Assembly: GCA_002269645.1 (NCBI GenBank)
Contig: NIVC01004000.1
Coordinates: 1,789 to 65,788 of the forward strand
Direction: 5' to 3'
DNA length: 64,000 nt
Source of the DNA: Macrostomum lignano
Lineage: Eukaryota
The position numbers were made by a program, and so were the translations under genes. This document shows, piece by piece, positions 22,113-58,163 of this stretch (positions within the stretch are counted from its first letter, which is position 1; each line of letters begins with the position of its first letter). The notes below the pieces were generated by a model. That model had not been told where the DNA came from. It did no database searches and saw only the letters and a program-made list of their open reading frames with translations.

Positions 22113-22660
22113 ACTCTCTCCTTACTGCTATCTCATTGGCTGAGCTAGATTGAGCCTGCCCCCTAGGCTGAGTTTCATCGGTCTAACGTTGACCTCTCTC
22201 CTTACTGCTATCTCATTGGCTGAGCTAGATTGGGCCTGCCCCCTAGGCTGAGTTTCATCGGTCTAACGTTGACCTCTCTCCTTACTGCTCTCTCATTGGC
22301 TGAGCTAGATTGGGCCTGTCCCCTAGGCTGAGTTTCATCGGTCTAACGTTGACCTCTCTCCTTACTGCTCTCTCATTGGCTGAGCTAGATTGGGCCTGTC
22401 CCCTAGGCGAGTTTCGTCCGTCTGACTTTGACCTCTCTCCTTACTGCTCTCTCATTGGCTGAGCTAGATTGGGCCTGCCCCCTAGGCTGAGTTTCATCGG
22501 TCTAACGCTGACCTCTCCTTACTGCTCTCTCATTGGCTGAGCTAGATTGAGCCTGTCCCCTAGGCTGAGTTTCATCGGTCTAACGCTGACCTCTCTCCTT
22601 ACTGCTCTCTCATTGGCTGAGCTAGATTGGGCCTGCCCCCCAGGCTGAGTTTTGTCCGTC
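22113..22660. repeat. 80-bp tandem repeat containing ATTGGCTG (reverse CCAAT box)
   Basis: Period 80 (22121, 22201, 22281); about 7 copies. Confidence 0.95.
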
Positions 22661-23236
22661 TTGCGTTCACTTGTGCACATCGAGTTAAATGCTTGTTCGA
22701 TCTTAACCCCATTATGCTCCGGAGGCCGCAAACCCCAGACAGAGGAAGGGAAGGCAATTTTAGCTGCCATAGTAAAGTCAAGTGACACTGCGCATATAAA
22801 CTACTGAAACCTAAAAGAGGCTCTGCTTTTCTACAACTAATTGCAAGTGACGTATTCAGTTATTATGGTATATTTGTGGTTTGGATGCGTAAGAGTTGCA
22901 TTCCATATTGTTTTTTCCGTGTTAATTAGCTCTAAAAACTGTAATTACTAGCCTGATTTATCTATTTTAGATAGTAAAATTGTCTCTTCTCTTGCTCACC
23001 TTGTTTGATTCACTAATTGCCTGCTGTTTAATAGAGAGAACATATTTTACCGATTTTGTCCAATTTTAGTTATTGTTTTTTTGTTCGTAATTATTGACAG
23101 GCACAACTTTCTGTTCTCCGCATTCCTGTTAATGCAAGGGGGTTGGTTAAACTTATTTATTGTGAAGAATTACCTATTTCTGGCTTATACTTTTTTCAAC
23201 GGTACCATCCTATATACTAAAATGTTATCACTGTAA

Positions 23237-35243: not shown

Positions 35244-35752
35244 TCATATGACAAGCTGGGTGCCTGTTACCTCCGCGTCGACACCGTATATTTTCTGAGC
35301 CCCGCTCTTTTTGCGCTTCTTCATCAGAGCAATCTGGTATGATCGCTGGGCCGCGACCAAGTTTAGAATCTTCTCTTTGCGCTCCTTCATTTTCGCTTTT
35401 GCCTCCTTCAATTCCTTCTTGTATTGCTCTTCTTTCTTCTTTTGTTCGGCTCTTCGCCGCAACCTCTCGGCGTTGTCACGCTCGCGCTGTTCTTGCGCCA
35501 GCCGCTGTTCTAGCTCATAGTTTGCTTCAACATTCTGCTGAACTGTGGGGCGGGTTCAATGACTGCATCGAATCAGGTCCTACAGATCGCTACTTTTAAT
35601 ATGCTGGTCCAATAATAACATAATAGTAACGGCGGCACAACTTTGACTCACTCACCCTGCTGCACAGGAGCCGGTTTTTTGCATCCTTCGCTGTATTGTA
35701 CAAAAACCGCGAACAAGATTGCAGGCAATGCTAGGTATCTGAAAAATGCCAT
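35244..35752 (-). CDS. P1: secreted charged-helix protein, 131 aa, uncharacterised
   Basis: Exon 1 35752-35656 MAFFRYLALPAILFAVFVQYSEG|CKKPAPVQQ, donor gtgagt (phase 1); exon 2 35542-35244 (V)QQNVEANYELEQRL..EEQYKKELKEAKAKMKERKEKIL..KKRKKSGAQKIYGVDAEVTGTQLVI; paralog of P2. Exact acceptor is less certain. Confidence 0.8.
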
Positions 35753-36499
35753 TACTTGTTGGCATCCGAAAGGAGCGTTGCCGATAAGATAGATGGGCTT
35801 AGCCTCGCAGCTTTACTTTCCTAGTAAACTACACTTTGACAGCTCGCCCTAGAGTATAGTCTATGGCCTTCTCACTCAGGCTTCAGTGCGCGCGTAAAAT
35901 TCCACTTATTTACTTTTTGTTTCTGGGTAAAAAGATGCAGGGAACCGCGCGGGTGAAGAGTGATTGGAATTCGTCATTCACTCAGCTACATGTTAAAGCC
36001 AACAAATGGCAGCTTGAATCCAACTCGATCTAGCAGCCAAAACACTTTCTCACTCTCAACCACTCGATTGCAAACTAATTGTGACCTATTTAAGCGTGTC
36101 TAAAATAACTACAAAATGAAACTAAGGGAAGAATTTATAGTCTAGATTAATAAGCTGAGAACTCACAACTCGTCAGGTACCAACATCAGGGTTGACATGA
36201 CTACGACGTATCTTCTCCGACCCATCCCATTGGTTCTTCCTCTTCAACCATCATCGGTCTGGCCATCTTCGGTCAACGAGGTAGTTAAAAACTTTGAAAA
36301 ACTGCAACAGAAACCAAGATACCGCACACTGCCCGCATTCACACAGTGCACTGAAATTTACAGTCTCCTGCAGTGGCTCCAAATAAGTTTAAATCTCTAA
36401 ATCTATAACGCTGGCACAGGGGGTCAGTGACGCTGGCACAGGGGGGTCAGTGAAGCACCTGCTGGTGGAAAACAGCTGAGTCCATCCTAGCTGCAGACA

Positions 36500-37670
36500 G
36501 TGGGGGGGGGGTAAGACTGCAAGTTAGAGAGTACAGTGTCCGTCAGAGTGGTGGCTGAGCAGCAGGTCGGTGAGCTGGGGCCCGGTGCCCCGTGTGTGGG
36601 CACGCAGGCAGAGGCCGATCAACATCTGGCGTCGTCTCTGCGACCACGCGGGTCCGGGCCGCCAGCTCGGCGTTGCTCACGCGCTCGGGGAACCGGATGC
36701 CCAGGGCATTGTGCATGAGGTGGCGATGGCAGCCCTCCAAGCTCGCCTGACGAGTGGCAGTCATGGGAACAGCTACCAGCAGCCCGTAGGTCAGCACCGT
36801 CTCAACTGCCGAGCGGAATAGGGCGACGTTCAGGCTGTCGGTGGCGAGCCAGTAGTTGAAGATGGAGCGGAGAAGGTGGGAGGCCCACCAGGCTGTGCTT
36901 GCGGTTGTTGACAATGACATCCGGGTCAGAGACCAGGACACCCCAGATACTTGAACTGGTTGCACAGGGCGATGGTGTTGCTGTCCGGCAGAAGCAGCAG
37001 TGGAGAGTTGGCAATGCCAACATGCAGCACCTCTGCCTTGCCGTAGTTGATGTGGAGCCCCACGCGCTTCCCCTCGTTGGTCCGCCGACTCACCGCCGTC
37101 TGCGCAGCTTTGAGACTGCAGCAGGTCAGCGCCAGGTCGTCGGCGCAGGCGAGGCAGGTCGGCTTGACGCAGGCAAAGCGGGAGCTACGGCGAAGCACCA
37201 CTTCATAGCCGTCTTCATCGCGCAGAGCCAACCGCATGACGAAGTCGATCAGGATGACGAATACAAACAGGTGTCGCTTTGCGGAAGTGGTTGTCAATTC
37301 AGCTTTAGGGCCGTGGTCAGTCTAGACGAAAGCGCCTTGGATGAGCTGTAGAGGTCCATGATCGCCTGGACCAGCATCTGAGAAACTCCATGCTGCTGGA
37401 GGAGCTACGCAATGGCCTGGCCGCCCGGCTGACTGAGTCAAAAGCTTTGCACAAATCTGCAAAAACAATTGACACCGCCTTTTGGCGAGTCTTGCAGGTG
37501 TCTATGATGCACCGGACCGCAGCGACTTGTTTTTGCTGTTGACCGTCCAGGTTGGAAGCCGTTCTGGATATTGAGAAGCCTCTGGTTGATGATGGGTTGA
37601 ATGCGGTTTCGAAGGATGGTGTTAGGACTTTGGCCAGGGTGCACTCCAGGGCGAAGTGACTGATATTGAC
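36500..37670 (-). pseudogene. Degenerate non-LTR (LINE) reverse transcriptase, RTE/RTEX-like
   Basis: Frameshifted pieces IQNGFQPGRST, SIVFADLCKAFDSVSR, FVILIDFVMR, CLACADDLAL, VGLHINYGKAEVL, QFKYLG. Confidence 0.85.
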
Positions 37671-37789
37671 GTACGATATTGACCCACAATATTGACGTAC
37701 ACTGTCGTTTCCTTTACTCACATTTCGAGTTCATACTAGCAAATATTGACTTAATGTTCCCACTTTTATACCTTCATTTTATTTATTCT

Positions 37790-38362
37790 AATTGTGTTGT
37801 ACTTCCGGATGTGCTTCGCGGATTGCTAGCTGGATTACGCTGGGGTGATTGGCCAGGTGCACGCTGTAGCCGCCTTCAGAGAGCCAGCGCTGAGAAGACT
37901 GATCCGACACCAACCTTTGTGAACTGTAGTCTGTTCCCCGGCGGTGTGCGTTGTTGTTTTTTTAGAAGCTCATACGACTTGCCTCCCACGCTGGGATTAG
38001 CTGCATCGATTGGGAAAATACCAGCCCACCTGCTACGTGTATCACATTCCTGGGAGTGCAAATCGACAGCACATCCGGTCTAGCTGCTATCCCTGCCGCA
38101 GAGCAAGACAGATGAGCTGCGGATGTTGCTGCGTGGAGGTTTGAGCGCTAAGAGTCTGTCAAAGCTTCAACTTCAAAAGCTGGTGGGCAAAATCGGCTGG
38201 TTTTTGCAAGGTGGCTCGCCCCGCTCGAGTCTTTCTGCGAGCTCGAATTGACGTCACCAACACCATCAATGGGTGTCATCGCCGGATTCCCGTGGCGGGC
38301 GAGCTCCGCGTTCAACTGGACTGGTGGCAGCATGGCCTTCCGCCTTTCCATGCAATCGTCTC
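37790..38362 (+). pseudogene. DIRS/Ngaro-type (tyrosine recombinase retrotransposon) pol remnant
   Basis: TSPPATCITFLGVQIDS, LPQSKTDELR, LSKLQLQKLVGKIGWF, ARVFLRARID..RRIPVAGELRVQLDWW resemble the DIRS RT C-terminal/connection region; frameshifted. Confidence 0.7.
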
Positions 38363-39118
38363 TGGTGCTAAAGCCCCTGGTGCTAAAGCCCCTGGTGCTA
38401 AAGCCCCTGGTGCTAAAGCCCCTGGTGCTAAAGCCCCTGGTGCTAAAGCCCCTGGTGCTAAAGCCCCTGGTGCTAAAGCCCCTGGTGCTAAAGCCCCTGG
38501 TGCTAAAGCCCCTGGTGCTAAAGCCCCTGGTGCTAAAGCCCCTGGTGCTGAAGCATTTGGTGCTAAAACCACTGGTGCTAAAGCACTTGGTGCTAAAGCC
38601 ACTGGTGCTAAAACCACTGGTGCTAAAACCACTGGTGCTAAAGCCACTGGTGCTAAAACCACTGGTGCTAAAACCACTGGTGCTAAAGCCACTGGTGCTA
38701 AAGCCACTGGTGCTAAAACCATTGGTGCTAAAGCCACTGGAGCTAAAGCCACTGGTGCTAAAGCCACTGGTGCTAAAGCCACTGGTGCTAAAGCCACTGG
38801 TGCTAAAGTCCCTGGTGCTAAAGCCACTGGTGCTAAAACCATTGGTGCTAAAGCCCCTGGTGCTAAAGCCCCTGGTGCTAAAGCCCCTGGTGCTAAAGCC
38901 CCTGGTGCTAAAGCCCCTGGTGCTAAAGCCCCTGGTGCTAAAGCCCTTGGTGCTAAAGCCCCTGGTGCTAAAGCCCCTGGTGCTAAAGCCCCTGGTGCTA
39001 AAGCCCCTGGTGCTAAAACCACTGGTGCTAAAACCACTGGTGCTAAAGCCACTGGTGCTAAAGCCCCTGGTGCTAAAGCCACTGGTGCTAAAACCACTGG
39101 TGCTAAATATCCTGGTGC
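38363..39118. repeat. 15-bp minisatellite CTGGTGCTAAAGCCC
   Basis: About 50 copies, reading GAKAP/GAKTT in the DIRS frame. Confidence 0.97.
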
Positions 39119-39547
39119 TGACGCTTCAGCGCCCTCCATAATTAATCCTACCCGGCAGCTTACACTCCTGCAAGCTGAAACCGAGCAGTCCGTGCCAGCG
39201 GTAATTGCCATAGCAGTTTTTTTCTCTCTAATACCACAATAGACAATACAGTGCTGCACAAATAGCTCGTACTTCTCTATCCTCTTGAAAATCGCAATAC
39301 ATCTAATTGAATGAGAAATTGCAATAAAACAGGCAATTAAAAATGAGTTAAAACACTGTCCTGTGTATTATTTATAAACCGATCCAGTAAAGTAAACGAA
39401 ATTAAATTTCCTGACCAGTAGAACTCTAGAATATTAACAAAACTTCTCAGGCTTTTGTCTTGAGCTGCGCCTTAAACTGTCAATTATCTCGGTTTCGTCC
39501 TTAATAAATAAAACTGCAGCTGATGGTTGCGGAGCGGTCTCCGCAAT

Positions 39548-40096
39548 CTAGAGGATTATTTGCGTACCAGTGGTGGTGGCCACAATGCCTGCGATCTTCT
39601 TCTCGCCTTTCTTCTTCCGCTGCTCCAGCAGAGACTCCTGCTTGGTGCGCTCGGTTGCTATGGTTTCAAGGAGCTGTTTGTTTCGCTGTCGCATTTTCGC
39701 TTTGGCCTCGTCCAATTTCTTCTTGTATTCTTTTTCTTCTGCCTCCTGCTTTTTCTTCTTTTCGGCTTCGTCAGTTTCCTCTTTCGGCTTTTTCTTTAGC
39801 GTGTAAGACTTGTAGAACTCTTTCACTGTTAATATAGCATGGGGAAAAGTGTGTTTTGTCAGAGTCTGTTCATAAACTGACTGACTTTTTAAGGCTTTGT
39901 CATCACGGCTGTTAATGGCATGAAATTCCCCTCTTATAGTCCTTTTTACTGTTTTTACTGAATGAAAACATGCGGTTGGAATTGCCAACTCACCCTTATT
40001 GACCGCCGCTTTGCATCCGCTGCTATAGTCCGGCAGCACAGCTAGCAGAATGACTGCCAGCAACAGGCATTTCATCGACCATTTCAATAGCACCAT
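39548..40096 (-). CDS. P2: secreted charged-helix protein, 126 aa spliced (182 aa if the intron is retained)
   Basis: Exon 1 40096-39994 MVLLKWSMKCLLLAVILLAVLPDYSSG|CKAAVNK, donor gtgagt (phase 1); acceptor ttaacag at 39826; exon 2 39825-39548 ..EEKEYKKKLDEAKAKMRQRNKQLL..RKKKGEKKIAGIVATTTGTQIIL. Confidence 0.85.
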   Translation of the reverse strand: MVLLKWSMKCLLLAVILLAVLPDYSSGCKAAVNKGELAIPTACFHSVKTVKRTIRGEFHAINSRDDKALKSQSVYEQTLTKHTFPHAILTVKEFYKSYTLKKKPKEETDEAEKKKKQEAEEKEYKKKLDEAKAKMRQRNKQLLETIATERTKQESLLEQRKKKGEKKIAGIVATTTGTQIIL

Positions 40097-40542
40097 TTCA
40101 AGCTAATCTGATTTGCAGTCCGAGCTTCTTCTTCTAGCCCGCGTCTCGCAAAGTGCACTTTTGTCTACCTAACTATGATTTTCTCAGCCGCTTCTTTACC
40201 TGTGAGTGAGCCCATAGATAGGGTGGCTGCTGTAGACTGTGGGCAATCTTTTAACTATTAACTGTGCATGTTTTATGGCTAGCAAACTCTGCGAGTTCGC
40301 AATCGATCAAAACGTAAATTTTAACAAAAAAAACTTTGCGAACTTTAGTCCCAGAGATGCCAACCGGAAAAAAACACATGCTAAACTTTCAAAGTCAACC
40401 ATGCACTTGGATGACATTGTTGACTTATCAAGTTTGCAAAGTATCATTGTCATGAACTTAAACAGTATATGCAATGCTTTTGTCAAAGTTCAATCGACTT
40501 GAAAAGTTTACAAAGTACACGCCTGTCTCTACATCCAAGTAC

Positions 40543-41240
40543 CAAGGACGACTTAAGTAGAAGGACGGGAAACCTCGTTTCTTAGAAAATTTTTGAAGGC
40601 ACTTTTTCCCGAAAAAATACACTACGGAGATAGGAAATTTTCATTTTTTCAGCACAAAAATTGCTATTACTTTTGATAGGAGGCAGATCCAGTGCTCATC
40701 TTTTGATATGTTGTGCCTTTTTTATTGCTCTATCGATATTTATAAAGCTTTTAGTTCAGAAAATTAGGATTATATGTCAATTTTTTATTCTACGTACATT
40801 TCCTGTATCTGAAAATCACAAAAATGCATGACACAGCTCCAATATTTGCTTTTATGAACCTGTTTTATCATCTCTGTTACGAATATTTGCTAAACAGTCA
40901 GTTAAGAATGATAAAATAGACTTCTAAAACCAAAGAGCCGAGCCGTGGCATTCTAATGTATTTCAATCACAAGACACGTGGAAATATACGGAGAATAAAA
41001 AATTTACATAGAATCCTAATTTTCTGAACTAAAAGCTTTGTAAATATCGATAGAGCAATAAAAAAGGCACAACATATCAAAAGATGAGCACTGGATCTGC
41101 CTCCTATCAAAAGTAATAGCAATTTTTGTGCTGAAAAAATGAAAATTTCCTATCTCCGTAGTGTATTTTTTCGGGAAAAAGTGCCTTCAAAAATTTTCTA
41201 AGAAACAAGGTTTCCCGTCCTTCTACTTAAGTCGTCCTTG
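40543..41240. mobile_element. Foldback MITE with CAAGG termini, P-superfamily-like, 698 bp
   Basis: About 255-bp near-perfect TIRs; 8-bp TSD CCAAGTAC at 40535-40542 and 41241-41248. Confidence 0.92.
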
Positions 41241-41774
41241 CCAAGTACTTGGAAAGTACTTATCGAATGTACTTTACTTAGGCTGTCCTCGCCACGAGGT
41301 TCCATTGTTGACTTATCAAGTAATTAGCAAGTTTGGTTTGTTTTTTCCTCGGGCAGGCACAACCCCCCTTGGAAGCAGTGTTGCTTTCGCTTTTCTGTGA
41401 TCTTCCTCTCCATGCAGCCACGGTGTGCACATGTACTTTTAACCTGATAAGCAATTAATAGGAAAGTCAAGTAAAGTTTTTCGAAATTCACTGCCGCCAC
41501 ACTTAGTGGAACATGAGTCTGTATTCTGTCTAACTGTAATTGTTGAAAGTGTTTAAGCATTTTTCCAGCATCAGATAAACTAAATACAAAAGTTGCCAAT
41601 GCTAATGAAACAACTACGAGTATAAATGCATTACAGAGGCCTTAAAATGTAGAGGAAATCAAATTGCACTCAATTAACAAATGAAAGCTGGAAAGAAATA
41701 GTAAATGTCTGTCATGGTGTACTAAGCGTAGAGATTGTAAGGTCGTAGCCAACATTTTTGTCCGTGGCCGGCTT

Positions 41775-43521
41775 CTATTTGTATGTGACAGGAGGCGGAG
41801 CGCTCTCGCTTTGCATCCGATTCTTCTTGTTATTTGTGTAGCCCAAACTGACACCACCAATGGTACCGGCGGCAAGCATTCCAGTGCCAACACTGATTCC
41901 GGCTGTTTTTGTCGCACTGGGGCTTTTTTTAGCTGTTTTGCCCACCTTCTCGGCGCTTTGGGCAATATCGGCGGCCGCTTTCGGCGCCTTCTTTCCGCGT
42001 CCGAATACTCGACCGACGCGCCTGCCAACCGCCTTGACCGCTGCGTGCGAATTAGAAGCGGGTTGGGGTTGCGGCTCTCAGTTTCGGATCAGTGCCTGCC
42101 TATACTATAGTTGTAACAATATTCACAGGGGACTGTAGCCTAGTGGTTCAAGGTCGGGGGTTCGATTCCTGATCCTACTGGAACAATTTGTGTCCTTGAG
42201 AAAGACACTTAACCTCTGCATAGCTTCAGTTCACCCAGCTGTAAAATGGGTGCCAGCATTAGCTGGGGTAATTGAGGCTGTGTGTGGCGACCCCCCAGTC
42301 CTTGGACTGAACAGCCGCTGAGATAACTGCGGCTGAGCTGTCGGTTGCACATATTTCCATTACGGCAGCACAAAGTCCCGAGCACATTTAAGTGCGCCAA
42401 TATCAAAACTTTTCGGCCTATGATATAAGCATTCTTTCTTTCAGAATTAAATCTTAGCAGCGCATTCGAGGCCACTCGGCAACTCCCCCATACGCCCCCG
42501 AACCAAATGGGTGATTCCCTATGAGCCCTGAATCAATTAACAGGGTGATTCCTCTAGAGGCCTGAACCTACTAGGTGATTCCCTATGAGCCCTGAACCAA
42601 CTGGGTGATTCCCTATGAGCCCTGAACCAACTGGGTGATTCCCTATGAGCCCTGAATCAATTAACAGGGTGATTCCTCTAGAGGCCTGAACTTACTAGGT
42701 GATTCCCTATGAGCCCTGAACCAACTGGGTGATTCCCTATGAGCCCTAAATCAATTAACAGGGTGATTCCTCTAGAGGCCTGAACCTACTAGGTGATTCC
42801 CTATGAGCCCTGAACCAACTGGGTGATTCCCTATGAGCCCTAAACCAACTGGGTGATTCCTCATGAGCCCTGAACCAACTGGATGATTCCCCTCATGAGC
42901 TCTGAACCAACTGGGTGATTCCTCATGAGCCCTGAACCAACTGGGTGACTCCTCATGAGCCCTGAACCAACTGGGTGATTCCTCATGAGCTCTGAACCAA
43001 CTGGGTGATTCCTCATGAGCTCTGAACCAACTGGGTGATTCCTCATGAGCCCTGAACCAACTGGGTGATTCCTCATGAGCCCTGAACCAACTGGGTGACT
43101 CCTCATGAGCCCTGAACCAACTGGGTGATTCCTCATGAGCCCTGAACCAACCGGGTGATTCCCCCCATGAGCCCTGAACCAACTGGGTGATTCCTCATGA
43201 GCCCTGAACCAACCGGGTGATTCCCCCCATGAGCCCTGAACCAACTGGGTGATTCCTCATGAGCCCTGAACCAACCGGGTGATTCCCCCCATGAGCCCTG
43301 AACCAACCGGGTGATTCCGCAAGAGCACTACTGTAAACCAATTTTGATACTAATGCCAATTGGGTAATTCTCTTATGCATTATAGTATAATTTCTAATTT
43401 TAAGGCACATAAGCAAGGCTGACTACTTACCACCTTTCAATTTCCTAAAGCAGCCATCGCCAGGTTCGATGAGGATCACCAGCACAATGGTAAATAACAA
43501 TGCTAATCTTATGTAACCCAT
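41775..43521 (-). CDS. P3: secreted cationic amphipathic peptide precursor, 118 aa
   Basis: Exon 1 43521-43431 MGYIRLALLFTIVLVILIEPGDG|CFRKLKG, donor gtaagt; exon 2 42040-41775 (A)VKAVGRRVGRVFGRGKKAPKAAADIAQSAEKVGKTAKKSPSATKTAGISVGTGMLAAGTIGGVSLGYTNNKKNRMQSESAPPPVTYK. The ORF track gives the wrong frame here. Confidence 0.88.
42128..42352 (+). mobile_element. CORE-type SINE, family B copy with internal head deletion, inside the P3 intron
   Basis: TAGCCTAGTGGTT..GGTTCGATTCC..GTGTCCTTGAG..CAGTTCACCCAGCTGTAAAATGGGTGCCAG. Confidence 0.85.
42500..43316. repeat. 29-32-bp minisatellite TCATGAGCCCTGAACCAACTGGGTGATTCC (P3 intron)
   Basis: About 27 copies. Confidence 0.95.
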
Positions 43522-43954
43522 TATAGGTCCCAGTTATTCTCTACTCTCTTGTATGACTGCTCTATTGAAGTGATATTTCTACCAAGATGACAACTACAAC
43601 CGGCAAGTGATGCATCGAGGCTCAAGTTGCTTTTTTCGGCAATCAAATTTTTAGCGATTTCAAGCATTTAGGTTGATAGTAGATTACCATAGACATGATC
43701 TGACTGCCGTATAATAATAAAAAAGTCCCTTTATTAAAAAAGTAACAAATTACTGCAGCAAACAACAAGCTCTTATTCACTGCACCAGTATAATTATAAT
43801 TAGTCGTCTTGCAGTTTTGTTCGAGATAGAATTAAGTAAAACTTAAGCAAAGACCACCTTTGCAATGCATTTAAATGTTTATATTCGAATAAATGACATT
43901 ATTACGCTGTGGTTTATTTTATTCTGATCACCAAGGCGGATGGTGATGGGTGGG

Positions 43955-44216
43955 TGGTTACCAAGGTGGATGATTACCAAGGTGGGTGATTACCAAGGTG
44001 GGTGATTACCAAGGTGGATGATTACCAAGGTGGACGATTACCAAGGTGGGTGATTACCAAGGTGGGTGATTACCAAGGTGGGTGATTACCAAGGTGGGTG
44101 ATTACCAAGGTGGGTGATTACCAAGGTGGGTGATTACCAAGGTGGATGATTACCAAGGTGGGTGATTACCAAGGTGGGTGATTACCAAGGTGGGTGATTA
44201 CCAAGGTGGGTGATTA
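43955..44216. repeat. 16-bp tandem repeat CCAAGGTGGGTGATTA
   Basis: About 16 copies between P4 and P3. Confidence 0.95.
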
Positions 44217-44725
44217 CGCGACCCGCCAATTAAAGTCGCAGGATGGTAGACAGGCGTGGCAGCGAGGTCCTCGAGTGCAGAGCCATAAGTGGAGAACCAA
44301 ATAAAAACGAAACTTAAGTTAGAAGACTACTGTGCAAGCTTAAAAGAATTGAGTACATAGTCACTATAAGAATATATGAGATATAATCTGTGAAGCACAA
44401 CTGAAACTGTCTAAGAAGCTTTATTTATATTATATGTTAAAACTAAAGTCACGAGTCCTCTGCCGATGACATACCGGTAAAAATAACATCCAGTAAAACA
44501 AAATTTACAAAAACACATTTCAACTGCTCAAAGTGCAATTTTGGCAAACTACGTAGATCTGGATCTAATTTAAAAGAAACTGTGCTGATTTAAAAATAAA
44601 TTTTAAAAGAAAAATTTTTGGTAAATTGGCTATATACTTAACAATTGAATACGCAACGAGTATTTCGAGTATAAGAATACCGCAAAGTACACATTATTTC
44701 CTTATGCATGTCTGTGCAGGGTCTC

Positions 44726-46114
44726 TTAGTGGGTGACGTACGAACCGCTGCTCATGCCTTTTTTCTTCTCTTTTTCCCCCACGTACACGGCGCCCCCCAG
44801 TGCCGCACCTCCAACCGTGCCACCAATGAGGAGCGAGCGCGCCGTGCTGAAGCTCTTGGACTTCTTGGCCACCTTGCCAACGTCGTCCGCAGAATTCGCA
44901 ATGACTTTGGCGGCTTTTGGGCGTCTGGCTATTTTGAACACCTTGCCGACTCTCTTGAAAGCTGGGGGCGCGAGAAGTTTTGTTAGAATGAAATGAATGA
45001 ATGCCCAGTGGCATTTAGAAAATAATAGCAATAAAAATTGGGATACGCTTCGGCGACATCTTCCCGCAGCCGCAGCCCTGAGGCAATTCTGCATGCAAGC
45101 GCGCCTCACACAGGGTGTACACAAGCGCGCCTCACACAGGGTGTACACAAGCGCGCCTCACACAGGGTGTACACAAGCGCGCCTCACACAGGGTGTACAC
45201 AAGCGCGCCTCACACAGGGTGTACACAAGCGCGCCTCACACAGGGTGTACACAAGCGCGCCTCACACAGGGTGTACACAAGCGCGCCTCACACAGGGTGT
45301 ACACAAGCGCGCCTCACACAGGGTGTACACAAGCGCGCCTTACTCGAAATCTAATGGTAAATGTTTTGAAGGCAACTTTTCGCCTTTATATTGGTCTTGT
45401 AATTATTTTAAACTTTTTTTTAAGTGACAGACCAATTTAACATAAAAAATCGATTAATGCGTCGTTAGAGCAGCATGTGAGGCACAAAATAGTGTGATTA
45501 GAACTTTCTCTGACACTATTAAGAGACCCAATCACTGTTTTAGTGTTGAAAATCGGGAAATTTCCTATCTCCTTTGTGTATTTTTCCGGTGAAACCGCTG
45601 CCTTTAAAACCATTTCTGGACGAAAAGCTTTATGAATATCGATAGAGCAATAAAAAAAGGCACAACATATCAAAATATGAACACTGGATCTGCCTCCTAT
45701 CAAAAGCAATAACAATTTTTGTGCTACAAAGATTAAATCCTCTTATCTCTCTAGTGTATTTTTCGGCGAAAAGTTGCCGTCAAAATATTTACCATTAGAT
45801 TTCGAGTGTTGCGTTCTTCTACTTAAGTTGTCCTTGGGTGTACAGCGGCCCTTTGACTGTCTAATCATCAGGCATGTACACTTTCTGTGCCCGAATCGCA
45901 CGACAGCTCCCTCCCGCGTTGATCTCAGTACGAGCGTGTTAAAAAAGGCCGTATGAATTCGAACAGTCTCAAGTTTTACCAATTTCATTGCCAACTGCAA
46001 GACTGACTACTTACCACCTTTCAAAGCCTTCAATTTCTTGACACAGCCTTCACCAGGTTCGATGAGGATCACCAGCACAATGCTAAATAGCAATGCTAAT
46101 CTTATGCATCCCAT
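44726..46114 (-). CDS. P4: secreted cationic amphipathic peptide precursor, 111 aa
   Basis: Exon 1 46114-46015 MGCIRLALLFSIVLVILIEPGEG|CVKKLKALKG, donor gtaagt; exon 2 44961-44726 (A)FKRVGKVFKIARRPKAAKVIANSADDVGKVAKKSKSFSTARSLLIGGTVGGAALGGAVYVGEKEKKKGMSSGSYVTH. Confidence 0.9.
45096..45339. repeat. 26-bp tandem repeat CAAGCGCGCCTCACACAGGGTGTACA
   Basis: Nine perfect copies plus a 10-nt partial copy. Confidence 0.97.
45122..45836. mobile_element. Second, diverged copy of the CAAGG foldback MITE family (P4 intron)
   Basis: Right end CTACTTAAGTTGTCCTTG and sub-terminal block match 40543-41240; 8-bp TSD GGTGTACA at 45114-45121 and 45837-45844; left end replaced by the 26-bp array. Confidence 0.8.
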
Positions 46115-46439
46115 TTAGGTTGCAGTTAAGTTATTTTTTAAACAGACACTCCTGTAGGGCTGTTGAAGAACAGATTAAACCGATATTTCTACGAAGATTA
46201 CGAAAAAGTTTTGTTGGCAATAAATAAATTTCGTTGGTTTGACAATAAATTGCCATAGACAATTTTAAATTGGCATCTTAAGAAAGACGCCGCTCATCTA
46301 AAATGCGATCAGAAGCAAACAGGAGAAACTGAGAGTAGGTGGGCTTGTTAAAATTGTGTTTTGACACAGCCTATGTCAAATTATTTATTGTAAAAAGCCT
46401 ACAGCGTCATCAAAACAGCATGACGTTAGAATCTAAGAC

Positions 46440-47505
46440 TTAGAAGAGGAAGGAGAAGATAAGAGGATAGATGAGATGAGAGATTAAAGGAAAGAGGAGA
46501 TAAGAGTATAGATGAGATCAAATATGAAAGGAAAGCGGAGATAAGAGGATAGATAATTTGAGAGATGAAAGGAAAGAGGGGATGAGAGGATAAATGAGAT
46601 GAGAGATGGAGAGATGAAAGAAGAAATGAGATGAAAGAAGAGATAAGAGGAAAGAAGAGATGAGAGATGAAAGAAGAGTTGAGGGATGAAAGAAGAGATG
46701 AGAGGAAAGAAGAGATGAGAGGAAAGATAAGATAAGAGGATAGATGAGATGAAGGATGAGAGATGAGAGGAAGAAGAGATAAGAGGATAGATGAGATGAG
46801 AGATGAGAGATGAAAGGAAAGAAGAGATGAGAGGATAAATGAGAGGAGAGATGAAAGAAGAGATGAGATGAAAGAAGAGATAAGAGGAAAGAAGAGATGA
46901 GATGAAAAAAGAGATGAGAGATGAAAGAAGAGTTGAGAGATGAAAGAAGAGATGAGAGTAAAGAAGAGATAAGAGGATAGATGGGATGAGTGATGAGAGA
47001 TGAGAGGAAGAAGAGATAAGAGGATAGATGAGATGAGAGATGAGAGATGAAAGGAAAGAAGAGATAAGAGGATAAATGAGAGGAGAGATGAAAGAAGAGA
47101 TGAGATGAAAGAAGAGATGAGATGATAGATGAGAGGAGAGATGAAAGAAGGGATGAGATGAAAGAAGAGATGAGATGATAGATGAGAGGAGAGATGAAAG
47201 AAGGGATGAGATGAAAGAAGAGATGAGAGATGAAAGAAGAGATGAGAGGATAGATGAGATGAGGGATGAGAGATGAGAGGAAAGAAGAGATAAGAGGATA
47301 AATGAGATGAGAGATGAGAGGAAAGAAGAGATAAGAGGATAGATAAGATGAGAAATGAGAGATGAAAGAAAAGAAGAGATGAGATGATAGATGAGAGGAG
47401 AGATGAAGAAAGAAATGAGATGAAAGAAGAGATGAGAGGAAAGAAGAGATGAGAGATGAAAGGAAAGAAAAGAGAGGAGAGAGAGGAGATGAGAGGGGAG
47501 ATTAG
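46440..47505. repeat. Purine-rich low-complexity satellite (GAAAGAAGAGATGAGA-like)
   Basis: Almost no C on the plus strand for 1 kb; lies between divergent genes P4 and P5. Confidence 0.95.
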
Positions 47506-47925
47506 AGAGCGGAGGTAGGCCAGATGATTGCTATTGTGAAGTTTCAAAGGACTCGAGGGCCAGATAGAAAGGCAATTCGCAGGTCGCGTGTGGAATCTAT
47601 CACTTCTTTCGTCTTCACCTTGAATTAAACCCATGGGATTCTTCCGTCATAGCCGAGCAGTAAACTATTTATGTATTTATTTGTTTAAATAATCTTCAAG
47701 TTACAAAAATAGTATCTACATCAATCGATAGAGAGTAGTTGTATCTATGGTCTGAATTAATTATATGTAGTAATTCTGGATATAGAAAAAAATCTGATTG
47801 CCCCAAATAACCAAGCAAGCTAGCGAAGGCCAATATTGAAATAATATTGATTTTCCAACTAAAACAACAGACCCACACAAATTTCTTCATGTACAAGCTC
47901 CAGTAAATGCTCAGGCAGACTTCTC

Positions 47926-49463
47926 ATGCGAACTCAAAGCTTTATAGCAATTTACTTTATTCTGCTCACGATTGTCAGCCAGTTTCCAAGCGGCGGCCAA
48001 TGCTGCCCGAAAGCAGTAAAATCATGTGAGTTTATCGAGTTTATGGAAATAATGCTTTATTATTAATTTGCACATTGAATGTCTGAGAAATTCAATAATT
48101 TTATTAGTAGGAAGTGAAGTCGAGGGAAGCTGTGATTGGTGAGAGCAGGCTGTGATTGGTGAGAGAAGCTGTGATTGGTGAGAGCAGGCTGTGATTGGTG
48201 AGAGCAGGCTGTGATTGGTGAGAGAAGCTGTGATTGGTGAGAGAAGCTGTGATTGGTGAGAGCAGCTGTGATTGGTGAGAGAAGCTGTGATTGGTGAGAG
48301 CAGCTGTGATTGGTGAGAGAAGCTGTGATTGGTGAGAGCAGCTGTGATTGGTGAGAGAAGCTGTGATTGGTGAGAGCAGCTGTGATTGGTGAGAGCAGCT
48401 GTGATTGGTGAGAGAAGCTGTGATTGGTGAGAGCAGCTGTGATTGGTGAGAGCAGGCTGTGATTGGTGAGAGCAGCTGTGATTGGTGAGAGAAGCTGTGA
48501 TTGGTGAGAGCAGCTGTGATTGGTGAGAGCAGGCTGTGATTGGTGAGAGCAGCTGTGATTGGTGAGAGCAGGCTGTGATTGGTGAGAGAAGCTGTGATTG
48601 GTGAGAGCAGTTGTGATTGGTGAGAGCAGCTGTGATTGGTGAGAGCAGCTGTGATTGGTGAGAGCAGGCTGTGATTGGTGAGAGCAGCTGTGATTGGTGA
48701 GAGAAGCTGTGATTGGTGAGAGCAGCTGTGATTGGTGAGAGCAGGCTGTGATTGGTGAGAGCAGGCTGTGATTGGTGAGAGCAGCTGTGATTGGTGAGAG
48801 CAGCTGTGATTGGTGAGAGCAGCTGTGATTGGTGAGAGAAGCTGTGATTGGTGAGAGCAGCTGTGATTGGTGAGAGCAGGCTGTGATTGGTGAGAGCAGG
48901 CTGTGATTGGTGAGAGCAGCTGTGGTTGGTGAGAGTAGCTGTGATTGCTACAATTTATTCAATCCTTGTTTGCAGTGAAATCGCGAGCGAAATCGTTTTT
49001 TAAGCTGAAATCTGCTAAGAAAGCCGGCGACGCGCCGGGCAACGCAAACAGGAAGTCCAGCGTTACCGACATGGATAATCCCGGGTGTAAAAATCCCTTT
49101 TTTCCCTGCAACGAGGGCGGCCTGGTGAAATCCGTGGGTAAAAAGGCCGGTGCGGCTCAAAAGGGGAAATCAAAAAAGTCCGCCGACTTGGATAATCCCG
49201 GCTGCCAGAATCCGTTTCTGCCCTGCAAAAAGAGCGGAGGCTTCTTTAAAAGAGCGGGCGGGGCTATCGGTCCACACAAAAAGAAAATCGGCTTCATAGG
49301 TGCTGGCGCTGCCACAACCGGCTTGGCCGCTACTGGAGCTGCTGGCATTGCTCTATCCAAATCCGGAAAAAGTGATCCGACAGCTCAAACAATTGATCCC
49401 GACAGAACGGGTCTCGCTGGTGGAGCGAAAGCTTATCTTGGTATTGACAAACAAACCGCGTGA
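47926..49463 (+). CDS. P5: secreted Lys/Gly-rich precursor with two Cys-loop modules, 195 aa
   Basis: Exon 1 47926-48025 MRTQSFIAIYFILLTIVSQFPSGGQCCPKAVKS, donor gtgagt (phase 1); acceptor tttgcag at 48975; exon 2 48976-49463 with DMDNPGCKNPFFPC, DLDNPGCQNPFLPC and IGFIGAGAATTGLAATGAAGIAL. Confidence 0.88.
48128..48946. repeat. 19/20-bp minisatellite GCTGTGATTGGTGAGAGCA(G) (reverse CCAATCAC) filling the P5 intron
   Basis: About 42 copies. Confidence 0.97.
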
Positions 49464-50199: not shown

Positions 50200-51140
50200 T
50201 CAAACAGTTTCATCAATCTTTGTCGACTTCCTCAAGGCTTTCGACTCGGTGGCCCGCGGTGCGCTCCCTCACGTGCTCCGTACCGCAGTAGCTGATCTTC
50301 GCAAACATGGCGCTGTACCAGGACACGACCGCTGCGGTAGCGACGCCGACGGACCGTCGGACCTGTTCAGCACGACCTCCGGAGTGCTGCAGGCCGTGAC
50401 ACTCTGGCGCCCTTCTCCTCTTTGTTTTGCTGATGGACTGTGTGCTCAGGAGGCGGCGGCCTGCCGACAGCAGAGAACGGCCTTCTACTGCAAAGGCGAC
50501 ACCAGTCGGCGACACCCGGAGAAGAGGCTGTTCCTCCTCGGCTACTAGCTCGGACGACCTCGCCCTGCATGCTGTCTACGACGGCCGAAGGCGCCCCAAC
50601 GGCTGCTGGATGGCCTGATTGTGGCGGCTGCAAGGGTCGGCCTCGTCATCAACGCCAAAAATACCGAGGTGCTGACAGTTCCCCACGATCTACCCGCCAA
50701 GATAAGACTCAGAGACGGCACGATGGCCCTGGGACGGTGCACCAAGTGCCGTCAGCCCCTCTACTTTAGCGGGCTGGTGACGGATGTGAGCGACGACCTG
50801 GGAGACGGCGCGGCCGGCAAGGCCTGGGCCGCCTTTCGATCTGTGGGCGGAGCTGCTTTCAGAGGCTCTATTGGACAGCTTTAGGTTCCAATGGCAGCTG
50901 TTCCAGGCTGTTGTCGAGACCGCCCTCGACCCTGTACTGGGCGCTCGAGAGGCAGCTCGATGTGGCGCATACGGCTCTGATTCGTGCCGCGTTCGGCGCC
51001 CGCCGCGGCCCTGGCAGCAAGATGACCGACTCCCCGTACCAGCGAGAGCGCACCTGACGCGGCCTTCTGTCCTGCTGAGCAAGCGACGTCTGCAGCTTGC
51101 CGGGCATGTCATCCGGGCCGAAGTCTATCTTGACAGCTGA
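50200..51140 (+). pseudogene. Degenerate LINE reverse transcriptase, same family as 36500-37670
   Basis: IFVDFLKAFDSVARGAL, TTSGVLQ, SDDLAL, AARVGLVINAKNTEVL, FQAVVETAL, RRLQLAGHVIR in shifting frames. Confidence 0.85.
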
Positions 51141-52021
51141 GGTTGCATGTGGATGTCATGTGCACAAGTACGTACATGTGCTTACACAGTATCCATCTGT
51201 TACATTTACGTTACGCATTAGAACCCACGAGAAGCGCATCAGCGCGTTGGCGAATATTTATTTTTGCATAGACTTTGTTGCCATGCATCTAGAAACTTTA
51301 GAGTTAAAATTTAATCTGATCTAATTCAAAATCCAAGCAAAATATTTTTATCTACATGTATGTAAACATTATGAACTTCGACCCTTCATCAGTTCCTTGC
51401 CTGATTTGATTGCAATAAAATTGTCGTTATACGAGTACGAGCTAAAATAATCTTCGCGGCTCGCGCACTCTTTGAATGCATACCTTTTGCGGTTCTTTAT
51501 TAAAGAATAATTAATTATTTGGAATTGTAGACGGCCATAAGCAGCATATGCACGATAGATAGCGCGTACTTCATCATAGTCTTGTCTGAATTCTTTAATT
51601 GATTGGCAAAACTAGACGTGTTAACTTACTACTACTACTACTACCCAATACATGCAGTGTGAATCTAGTATTAGTAATGTATAGCCGGTGCTATTGTTCT
51701 CAGCCATGTATTAAGCCTAAGGCAAGAATCCATGACATTTAGGAAGTTAAAGTAAACTATAATACTATTATATAAGCCTAGTCTAGTCAAAGTGTGTATA
51801 TGCACCTTGAATTTTGAAATTATACCCTAAGGCTTAAATTAGGCCTAAATTGGGTTTGGGTGTAGTTTAAGTGTAGCCATAGGACTAGTCTCACAACCTA
51901 TTCTAATTTTTCTTTTTTTAAAGCCTCATTTGCATTCAATCAAAAAAACACAAGCCAAGAAGTCAAAGCATTCTCTGAGTCTAAACACAAGAAAAGACAT
52001 GCCTATAGGCCTATTCTAGGT

Positions 52022-52315
52022 GGCAATGGATGGCTAGAGTTCCGGCACCGGAACCCATTTTCTAACAGCTAGGGATCCGGCAGTGCCGTATAGAAGCATA
52101 TAAAGACTGGTAAGAACATATCTTAAGAAGTCTGAATATTAGAAGCATCTCATCCCAAATCTTATCATATCATCTTAAATTTTAATCTAGAACAAAATCT
52201 CAATATCAGCCACCTATAGAAAGAAAAATATAATGTTCCATCTATATTATAATGGCACTACCGGATCCGTAGCCATTAGAAAATGGGTTCCGGTGCCGGA
52301 ACTCTAGCCATTGCC
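52022..52315. mobile_element. MITE with GGCAAT termini, about 295 bp
   Basis: About 60-bp TIR GGCAAT..GGCTAGAGTTCCGGCACCGGAACCCATTTTCTAA; flanked by (A)TTCTAGG direct repeat (7-8 bp). Confidence 0.85.
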
Positions 52316-56580: not shown

Positions 56581-56779
56581 GGCTTAGCTATTTTAGATTC
56601 TTTAGTAAATGAAAATATTTTAATAGCTTTTTAAAATATAGTCAGTTAATGAAAAATACATGAAGTGTTGCTGGATAATCCAGAGGTTAAATAAGTTCTG
56701 ATTAATTATAACTAATTATGCTATTAAAGTATTGCAATAACATTACATTGCAGCCTTTGACCTTATTTATTAGTAAGGA

Positions 56780-58163
56780 ATGGAAAACTGTCAGCCATCG
56801 GTGGTGAGGCAGCTGTCAAAGGAAGTGAAGGAACTGCTGCTTCATCCACCAGAAGGCATTAGAATTGTGTTCAATGAATCCAACCTCGCAGACATCCAGG
56901 CCTATATTGATGGTCCTGTTGACACACCCTACGCTGGCGGCAGTTTTCACATCAAGCTGCATCTGGGTTCCAACTATCCTAATGAGCCGCCGAAGGGCTA
57001 CTTTATCACTAAGATATTTCATCCGAATATTGCACCTCAGACTGGGGAGATCTGTGTTAACACGCTCAAACGGGATTGGACACCGGACACCGGGCTTAAG
57101 AAGCTTCTCCTAGTGATTAAATGCCTGCTCATTGTGCCTAATCCCGAGTCAGCCTTAAATGAAGATGCTGGCCGACTTTTGCTAGAAGAGTACTCTGAGT
57201 ACTTTGCTCGGGCTCGACTCTACACGGAGATTCACGCGTTAAAGTGTACAGAAGGCGGCGACTCTGCTGCTATGTGAGTTTAAGTAATCATCATAGTCTA
57301 TTCAGTTATGATTTTAAGTCTAAGCATATTTCCCAAATCCCAAACCTAATCTCCAAATCCATAGCATAATCCTCAAATCCCAAATCTAATCCTCAAATCC
57401 CAAACATACTCCCAAATCCCAAACTTAACCCCAAATCCCTAGCATAATCATCAAATCCCAAAACGAATTCTCAAATTTCAAACCTAATCTCCAAATCCCT
57501 AGCGTAATCCTCAAATCCCAAACCTAACCCCAAATCCCAAAATCCCAAATATAAGTCACCAGCTTAAAAAAGCCATCTCAAATCCCAAACCTTAATCCCA
57601 AATCCCAAATCTAATCCACAAATCCCAAACCTAATCCCTAAATCCCAAGCCTAATCTCCAAATCCCAGACCTGATCTTCAAATCCATAGCATAATCCTGA
57701 ACTCCCAAATCTAATCCGCAAATCCCAAACCTAACCCCAAATCCCTAGCATAATCCTCAAATCCTAAACCTAACCCCAAACTCCAAAATCCCAAATCTAA
57801 GTCACCAGCTTAAAAATCCATCTCAAATCCAAAACATTAATCCCAAAATCCAAAATCTAAGTCACCAGCTTAAAAATCCATCTCAAATCCCAAACCTTAA
57901 TCCCAAAATCTCAAATCTAAGTCAGCAGCTTAAGAATCCATCTCAAATCCCAAACCTTAATCCCAAATCCAAAATTTAAGTCACCAGCTTAAAAATCCAT
58001 CTCAAATCCCAAACCGCCGTCCAGCCTGAAGGATTCCAACGAGAACGGATCTGGCAGCGACAGCTCAAAGAAGCCCTCTGCAGCGTCAGCCTCATCAACT
58101 GGAACCGCAGCCGGAGCCAATGCAGCTAAAAGCAAGACTAAAAAGGCGCTGAAACGTTTGTGA
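56780..58163 (+). CDS. UBE2S: Ubiquitin-conjugating enzyme E2 S
   Basis: Exons 56780-57273 and 58025-58163 (phase 2); [47 protein letters not shown] and the diagnostic basic C-terminus KKALKRL. Confidence 0.95.
57330..58015. repeat. Degenerate CCCAAATCCCAAACCTAAT minisatellite with ~60-bp higher-order unit (UBE2S intron)
   Basis: Read directly. Confidence 0.9.

Follow-up and report, generated by a model that had tools for sequence, protein, structure and literature searches.

What might be the role of a cysteine that stands at, or immediately beside, the start of the mature chain in five adjacent genes for secretory proteins? The question is raised by a window of 64,000 nucleotides (positions 1,789 to 65,788 of contig NIVC01004000.1, hereafter C4000) in Mlig_3_7, the 764 Mb genome assembly of the flatworm Macrostomum lignano. 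The window contains a cluster of five small two-exon genes, P1 to P5, and the sole feature common to all five predicted proteins is a Cys that opens the mature chain or lies close to its N-terminus, ahead of a helix. A preliminary description of the locus had offered two possibilities, namely gene-encoded, N-acylated cationic peptides or a system of covalent dimers. The reading that we favour, tentatively, is that the N-proximal Cys makes interchain disulfide dimers; for this conserved residue, disulfide pairing appears more likely than attachment of a lipid.

The five genes were spliced by hand from both strands, using canonical GT...AG introns only. Each gene has a single phase-1 intron, which lies 7 to 10 residues downstream of the Cys in all five, and the spliced translations match the M. 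lignano proteins PAA48995 to PAA48999 in GenBank exactly. Since the annotation of Mlig_3_7 draws on RNA-seq (StringTie/TACO), on a de novo transcriptome and on TransDecoder (PMC5730564), this exact match provides transcript-level support for the gene models, and the five two-exon genes are genuine. Their signal-peptide exons were also conspicuous when the entire window was scanned crudely for hydrophobic N-termini. An exact-protein look-up for spliced transcript contigs recorded none, in a collection from which records of the species' own genome are possibly excluded. In P2, the intron is in frame with both exons and forms with them a continuous open frame of 184 a.a., so that intron retention would lengthen the protein rather than truncate it.

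P1 to P5 are predicted to be lineage-restricted genes for small secretory-pathway proteins of M. lignano. Three word-indexed searches of 5.8 billion clustered proteins found no homologues outside M. lignano, and when 1.84 billion representative proteins were searched in full with an HMMER profile, the matches were M. lignano entries only, with none from bacteria. When P2, P3 and P5 were used as protein queries against the genome (E up to 10), no extra paralogues appeared beyond the cluster and its copies on two further contigs, C1374 and C464. A Pfam scan of P1 to P5 gave no significant domain, no Gly-zipper match even at E up to 10, and no likeness to Hedgehog or EGF ligands. Two labels found in UniRef did not hold. 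For 'DUF148' (SXP/RAL-2, PF02520) on P2, PF02520 was not among the P2 matches at E up to 1, and the name 'Gly-zipper_YMGG domain-containing', which traces to an older, wrongly fused gene model, was not reproducible.

The cleavage sites were predicted by a rule-based scan only, using the -3/-1 rule and a c-region of 3 to 7 residues. The residues preceding the Cys are YSEG in P1, YSSG in P2, PGDG in P3, PGEG in P4 and SGGQ in P5. In P1, P3 and P4, G/C (a slash marking the cut) was the sole -3/-1 site with a c-region of that length; in P2 it ranked best, and the weaker sites SGC/K and CKA/A also satisfied the rule. Downstream of the signal peptide, P1 to P4 contain exactly one Cys each (Cys10 of P2 and Cys3 of P4 fall within the signal peptide), and the spliced translations thereby confirmed the earlier statement that the mature chain of these four proteins has no other Cys. 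All of the cleavage strings quoted in the preliminary description were present in the sequence. Its claim of an N-terminal Cys in all five proteins, however, stands for P1 to P4, on the strength of the rule-based G/C site, and is doubtful for P5, in which the best cut leaves Gln. The GGQ/CCPK cut suggested previously for P5 places Gln at -1 and violates the -3/-1 rule. The well-placed site in this protein is SGG/QCC, and a second choice, GQC/CPK, is weaker (c-region of 8). As judged from these sites, the N-terminus of P5 is probably Gln rather than Cys. The mature part of P5 contains six Cys, consisting of the adjacent pair and two C-x6-C pairs; the latter belong to two copies of the repeat DNPGC[KQ]NPF[FL]PC and are probably small disulfide loops. 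The C-x6-C motif calls to mind the 'Rana box' that occurs in frog peptides; it has no family match.

The predicted location of the Cys at +1 in P1 to P4 is more than chance. A random single Cys in a chain of 95 to 108 residues would occupy +1 in about 1 in 100 cases, and a predicted Cys at +1 is seen in both P1/P2 and P3/P4, two lineages that diverge separately. Among human proteins, about 87 are predicted to begin with Cys after the signal peptide (PMC8061759), which amounts to a few percent of the signal-peptide proteins.

P1 and P2 are paralogues with 42% identity, and exon 2 of P2 matches exon 2 of P1 at E ~5e-11. Their synonymous sites are saturated throughout and pN in the signal region is 0.34, and the sequences indicate that they are old duplicates; yet they have in common YS[ES]GCK at the Cys and TGTQ[LI][VI][IL] at the C-terminus. 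P3 and P4 are also paralogues (58% identity). Here, synonymous sites are saturated in exon 2 and the mature part, the signal part of exon 1 has a dS of 0.28, and near-identity spans exon 1, ~80 nt upstream and ~20 nt of the intron. This pattern points to a 5' module that was homogenised by gene conversion, or to a signal module that was recently copied or re-used. In view of this homogenised exon 1, the Cys that P3 and P4 have in common is not independent evidence and counts once. The earlier assertion that the Cys was kept although the rest diverged is thus borne out by P1 and P2, and loses ground in P3 and P4. P5 had no detectable relative in a protein search of the genome (E up to 10). The five exon 1 peptides can nonetheless be aligned, with M, I, G and C as the only invariant positions, an alignment that is compatible with a common ancestral signal exon and too short to prove one.

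The cluster is present in three homeologous copies, on contigs C4000, C1374 and C464, as expected for the neopolyploid M. lignano. Among the three homeologues, all amino-acid changes lie at residue 35 or beyond, and exon 1 differs by two synonymous changes only. Outside exon 1, pN/pS is ~0.85 when pooled over the five genes, and exceeds 1, on small counts, for P1, P3 and P4. The comparison suggests a constrained signal-plus-Cys module joined to fast-evolving mature parts. In the P1 homeologue on C464, there are 11 amino-acid differences, 10 of them within residues 35-68 of the helix, and 3 synonymous changes (pN/pS ~1.2). Relaxed or positive selection on the surface of the P1 helix is hinted at by the sequences.

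The predicted mature chains range from 88 to 171 residues. AlphaFold2 modelled P1, whose mature chain runs from CKKPAP to ...TGTQLVI, as a single helix at residues 29-112 followed by a small C-terminal beta hairpin, with a block-mean pLDDT above 90 for approximately residues 51-100. The hairpin is the portion conserved with P2. The P1 helix is rich in Lys, Glu, Arg and Gln, with sparse hydrophobic positions, and both P1 and P2 are of mixed charge (hydrophobic moment ~0.4, mean hydrophobicity from about -1.1 to -0.2). Each of P1 and P2 would consist of a single long helix that is highly charged.

In P3, P4 and P5, a cationic amphipathic N-terminal region is followed by a Gly-rich hydrophobic segment and then by a short Lys-rich polar tail. 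A mature pI of 10 to 11 accompanies the amphipathic region after the Cys, where the hydrophobic moment is 0.73 in P3 (residues 25-42), 0.66 in P4 (residues 30-47) and 0.50 in P5 (residues 26-43). AlphaFold2 placed a helix at residues 24-44 of P3, beginning at Cys24, with low confidence there and in the remainder of the chain. The hydrophobic segment is rich in Gly and Ala with GxxxG spacing. Its Kyte-Doolittle means over 19 residues are 1.27 to 1.53 (1.32 at residues 79-97 of P3 and 1.53 in P4), and an approximate biological-scale total comes to +3.5 to +4.4 kcal/mol. The designation of the products as cationic peptides is loose for chains of 88 to 171 residues, and P1 and P2, being charged helices, are atypical of cationic amphipathic peptides.

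Thiol-mediated quality control in the endoplasmic reticulum (ER) normally keeps back a secretory protein whose Cys is unpaired, until that Cys finds a partner. A lone Cys in a secreted protein usually ends up in an interchain disulfide, and free thiols are rare. In addition, there are natural antimicrobial peptides that are dimeric through a single Cys, namely distinctin, halocidin and dicynthaurin (PMC2931633). It is on the basis of this quality control and of these known peptides that we favour dimers. In the proposed mechanism, signal peptidase would cut immediately ahead of the Cys in P1 to P4, and in P5 would leave one or two residues ahead of the Cys-Cys; the lone N-proximal thiol would then form an interchain disulfide in the ER. 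The products would be parallel dimers joined covalently, in which a chain could pair with its own kind or with another member of the cluster. For P1 and P2, this bond would fasten together, in register, two charged helices of ~84 residues. For P3, P4 and P5, it would link two helices that are cationic and amphipathic, each with a weakly hydrophobic, Gly-zipper-like segment, and the paired chains would resemble membrane-active host-defence or cytolytic proteins. In this scheme, P3, P4 and P5 would be secreted membrane-active, possibly antimicrobial, proteins with a cecropin-like layout, and P1 and P2 would be charged rod-like partners.

The disulfide reading fits all five proteins, the Cys-Cys of P5 included. 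Since a near-N-terminal Cys is present in every one of them and proximity suffices for a disulfide, whereas acylation demands exact position 1, the distribution of the Cys suits pairing. The spare Cys-Cys of P5, beyond the two C-x6-C loops, would suit two interchain bonds. Likewise, the modelled start of the helix, five residues past the Cys in P1 and at the Cys in P3, would suit a parallel stapled dimer.

Several points weigh against disulfide dimers. Predicted from sequence, the disulfide and the dimers leave the exact predicted +1 position of the Cys in four proteins unexplained, and such precision is typical of N-terminal lipidation; gene conversion between P3 and P4, or shared ancestry of exon 1, could be behind part of it. 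The hydrophobic heptads of P1 and P2 are sparse, and these proteins may form a single alpha-helix or a weak coiled coil. The chains, at 88 to 171 residues, far exceed the known dimeric antimicrobial peptides in length. Finally, the five Mlig identifiers had no match in searches of M. lignano full texts and supplements for a site of expression.

If paired, P1 to P5 would vary a known design, in which small secreted proteins, cationic or helical, pair through a single Cys. Human apolipoprotein A-II is small, secreted and amphipathic-helical, and through the single Cys close to its N-terminus it forms a disulfide homodimer and mixed dimers. It differs from the cluster in its unrelated sequence, in the position of the Cys (position 6) and in binding lipid in plasma lipoproteins. 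Cecropin- and dermaseptin-type peptides and the nemertean cytolysin A-III serve as linear host-defence or cytolytic comparators. The likeness to them extends to an N-terminal helix that is cationic and amphipathic, a hydrophobic C-terminal part rich in Gly and Ala, a tandem cluster, and a conserved signal exon with a fast-evolving mature part; however, there is no homology, and the M. lignano chains are longer and have an extra polar tail and the N-terminal Cys. Distinctin, halocidin and dicynthaurin (PMC2931633) have one Cys per chain, as do P1 to P4, and cationic helical chains, as predicted for P3, P4 and P5, with homo- or heterodimers possible among co-expressed chains. In contrast to the cluster proteins, they are 15 to ~30 residues long, are released from larger precursors and have their Cys away from the signal-peptide junction. 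P1 and P2 differ further in being charged helices rather than amphipathic peptides.

Alternatively, the Cys might have no dedicated chemistry and have simply been inherited with the signal exon, or the cut might fall elsewhere (for example at SGC/K in P2), or the thiol might be free, capped by glutathione or cysteine, or cross-linked to mucus, glue or matrix. We consider this set of explanations unlikely. The homogenised exon 1 of P3 and P4 is in its favour, as are the alignment of the five exon 1 peptides around an invariant G-C, whose recurrence common descent could explain, and the purely rule-based nature of the cleavage sites. However, the old duplicates P1 and P2 retain YS[ES]GCK in spite of saturation and a signal pN of 0.34, exon 1 is without amino-acid change among the three homeologues as the remainder evolves fast, and free thiols are rare in secreted proteins.

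Somewhat less probable is that P3, P4 and P5 are type I membrane proteins, with the Gly-rich segment spanning the membrane, the cationic part luminal or outside, and a tail of 14 to 37 residues in the cytoplasm. The membrane-distal Cys would then join two subunits or have no special role. Near its C-terminus, each of the three proteins does have a single hydrophobic stretch, 19 to 23 residues long, and after it Lys-rich sequence, in line with the positive-inside rule, and GxxxG-type spacing is common in dimers of transmembrane helices. Nevertheless, the Kyte-Doolittle values of 1.27 to 1.53 fall short of the ~1.6 usually taken as the transmembrane threshold, the biological scale is unfavourable at +3.5 to +4.4 kcal/mol, and AlphaFold2 shows no helix at the segment, albeit with low confidence. 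Moreover, P1 and P2 have the same N-terminal design without a hydrophobic segment, and the putative ectodomain is strongly cationic and amphipathic, as in soluble membrane-active peptides.

The acylation reading holds that an HHAT-like enzyme of the MBOAT family links palmitate through an amide bond to Cys1 of P1 to P4, producing lipoproteins or lipopeptides that stick to membranes. We regard this as improbable. The Cys at exactly the predicted +1 in all four single-Cys proteins speaks for it, and the genome contains both candidate enzymes and a gene with a Hedgehog signalling domain, the N-terminal exon of which was outside the 3.4-kb loci examined. Most animals have one HHAT and one HHATL. 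A search of the M. lignano genome for the MBOAT family yielded many open frames, for which the closest solved structure was human HHAT (E 5e-31, 2e-24). We found about 20 HHAT-like loci, partly in tandem arrays, that represent at least five diverged types with 41-55% identity to each other. Judging from the sequences, most of the tested copies retain the catalytic Asp (WRVFDRG; FDxGL motif) and His (F[VI]S..HG); in one type, L041, the longest open frame is without the His motif. However, a 2026 preprint shows that enzymes from the HHAT/GUP1 clade may be devoid of peptide acyltransferase activity and probably remodel GPI anchors instead (bioRxiv 10.64898/2026.08.27.744591), so that the expansion of HHAT-like genes is circumstantial with regard to acylation.

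The residues around the Cys give a mixed picture. All of the proteins carry a basic residue among the first seven positions, which HHAT requires (PMC8061759). At position 2 of Shh, HHAT tolerates Gly, Ser, Ala, Pro and Gln, whereas Lys abolishes palmitoylation (PMC8061759). P1 (CKK) and P2 (CKA) fail by this rule, and P3 (CF) and P4 (CV) carry residues outside those tested in that study; the rule describes mammalian Hhat acting on Shh and may not apply to flatworm paralogues. Furthermore, an N-terminal Cys by itself is insufficient for palmitoylation, and Shh, Ihh and Dhh, 3 of the 87 human proteins predicted to begin with Cys, are the only substrates shown, which sets a low prior (PMC8061759). 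Like Hedgehog and the Drosophila proteins Spitz, Keren and Gurken, which are HHAT/Rasp substrates, P1 to P4 would have Cys1 exposed by the cut and a basic residue among the first seven, and the enzyme family is likewise present in the genome. They differ in that P1 to P5 have no sequence or domain relationship to the Hedgehog or EGF ligands, P1 and P2 bear the Lys at position 2 that HHAT rejects in Shh (PMC8061759), and P5 is most likely Gln-first. Of the acylation proposal in the preliminary description, then, a predicted Cys1 in P1 to P4, the basic residue and the HHAT-like genes are upheld, and Lys2 in P1 and P2 and the probable Gln of P5 tell against it. Less probable still is a broader version, in which M. 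lignano would use Hedgehog-type palmitoylation generally for lipid-anchored secreted effectors, with diverged HHAT-like enzymes acylating Cys1 of P1 to P4 and perhaps other proteins that are Cys-first after the signal peptide.

Bacterial Lpp combines Cys1 with a helical coiled coil, and SlyB and Pcp are glycine-zipper lipoproteins. P1 and P2 have an Lpp-like layout of signal peptide, Cys1 and long helix, and P3, P4 and P5 have a SlyB/Pcp-like layout of signal peptide, Cys1 and Gly-zipper segment. Bacterial origin or horizontal transfer of such lipoproteins was rejected, given the spliceosomal introns and animal housekeeping neighbours of P1 to P5, the lack of sequence similarity with no Pfam Gly-zipper match and no bacterial HMMER match, and the departure from the lipobox [LVI][ASTVI][GAS]C (YSEG/C in P1, PGDG/C in P3). 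To our knowledge, animals are without the Lgt/LspA/Lnt pathway. A neuropeptide precursor reading of P3 and P4 was discarded, as the dibasic and Gly-dibasic sites are not conserved in their alignment.

The surroundings of the cluster were also inspected (Table 1). The neighbouring genes, whose identities come from reading open frames by eye, include an HCN-type-looking cyclic-nucleotide-gated channel, a Rab GTPase, an ankyrin-repeat protein, a ubiquitin-conjugating E2 and a glutamyl-tRNA synthetase. Around the five genes there are also remnants of transposons and numerous minisatellites. A MITE-like foldback element, with arms of 261 nt that are 98% complementary and 176 nt apart, separates P2 from P3, and an 84%-similar copy of its arm is located within the P4 intron. 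In the cluster, nearly all introns and spacers have a minisatellite of their own, the period being 15 to 30 nt and the copy number ~55 at most. The array in the P4 intron is 100% identical across 9.4 copies, and more than 20 distinct arrays were counted across the window. As seen by eye, GC-rich LINE-type fragments resembling reverse transcriptase flank the cluster, and part of the P3 intron looks like a tRNA-derived SINE, where ARAGORN calls no tRNA.

Table 1 Features of the P1 to P5 cluster and HHAT-like loci (positions refer to the window unless a contig is named)
Feature	Position	Strand	Remarks
P1 (Mlig007023, PAA48995)	35244..35752	-	131 a.a.; splice model and exact GenBank match
P1 exons	exon 1 35656-35752; exon 2 35244-35542	-	
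P1 signal peptide codons	35684-35752	-	predicted
P1 Cys24 codon	35681-35683	-	
P1 homeologue	C464:172469-172975		
P2 (Mlig025199, PAA48996)	39548..40096	-	126 a.a.; splice model and exact GenBank match
P2 exons	exon 1 39994-40096; exon 2 39548-39825	-	
P2 signal peptide codons	40016-40096	-	predicted
P2 Cys28 codon	40013-40015	-	
P2 continuous open frame	39548-40102	-	
P3 (Mlig014360, PAA48997)	41775..43521	-	118 a.a.; splice model and exact GenBank match
P3 exons	exon 1 43431-43521; exon 2 41775-42040	-	
P3 signal peptide codons	43453-43521	-	predicted
P3 Cys24 codon	43450-43452	-	
P3 Gly-zipper-like hydrophobic segment	41838-41903	-	AGISVGTGMLAAGTIGGVSLGY
P4 (Mlig005534, PAA48998)	44726..46114	-	111 a.a.; splice model and exact GenBank match
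P4 exons	exon 1 46015-46114; exon 2 44726-44961	-	
P4 signal peptide codons	46046-46114	-	predicted
P4 Cys24 codon	46043-46045	-	
P4 Gly-rich segment	44777-44833	-	LLIGGTVGGAALGGAVYVG
P3/P4 near-identity	43380-43700 vs 45960-46290		
P5 (Mlig010768, PAA48999)	47926..49463	+	195 a.a.; head to head with P4; exact GenBank match
P5 exons	exon 1 47926-48025; exon 2 48976-49463	+	
P5 signal peptide codons	47926-47997	+	given the cut SGG/Q
P5 Gln25 codon	47998-48000	+	
P5 Cys26-Cys27 codons	48001-48006	+	
P5 repeats, C-x6-C	49086-49109; 49203-49226	+	two copies
P5 Gly/Ala-rich hydrophobic segment	49287-49355	+	
Foldback element	40543-41240		MITE-like
Foldback arm copy	45653-45790		
Minisatellite arrays	38362-39119; 42496-43326; 43949-44217; 45096-45340; 46457-47507; 48122-48947		42496-43326, P3 intron, 30-nt; 48122-48947, P5 intron, 19-nt
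LINE-type fragments	36500-37700; 50200-51150		by eye
SINE-like stretch	~42100-42300		by eye
HHAT-like loci	C493:559165-559767		
HHAT-like loci	C2730:2160-2762, 41007-41609		
HHAT-like loci	C2729:48061-48663, 56752-57354, 95726-96324		
HHAT-like loci	C4183:7097-7699, 22241-22843		
HHAT-like loci	C3352:42982-43575, 51587-52189		
HHAT-like loci	C215:291572-308356		three genes
HHAT-like loci	C421:138882-159877		three genes
HHAT-like loci	C2063:11702-12295		
HHAT-like loci	C894, C4683, C754		

If Cys1 of these proteins were acylated, they would be the first gene-encoded, N-lipidated secreted effectors of animals besides the Hedgehog and Spitz morphogens, with an Lpp/SlyB-like build; the substrate range of HHAT-type enzymes would reach beyond morphogens, and the HHAT-like expansion would gain a purpose. 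If, as we favour, the Cys forms disulfides, the cluster would provide a compact and tractable set of covalently paired, secreted helical proteins. Tandem paralogues that combine into mixed dimers would represent an under-explored route to effector diversity, in an animal for which transgenesis exists. In either case, these fast-evolving orphans, assembled round a constrained signal-plus-Cys exon, offer a clean case in which to follow the emergence of new secreted proteins around a reused signal exon.

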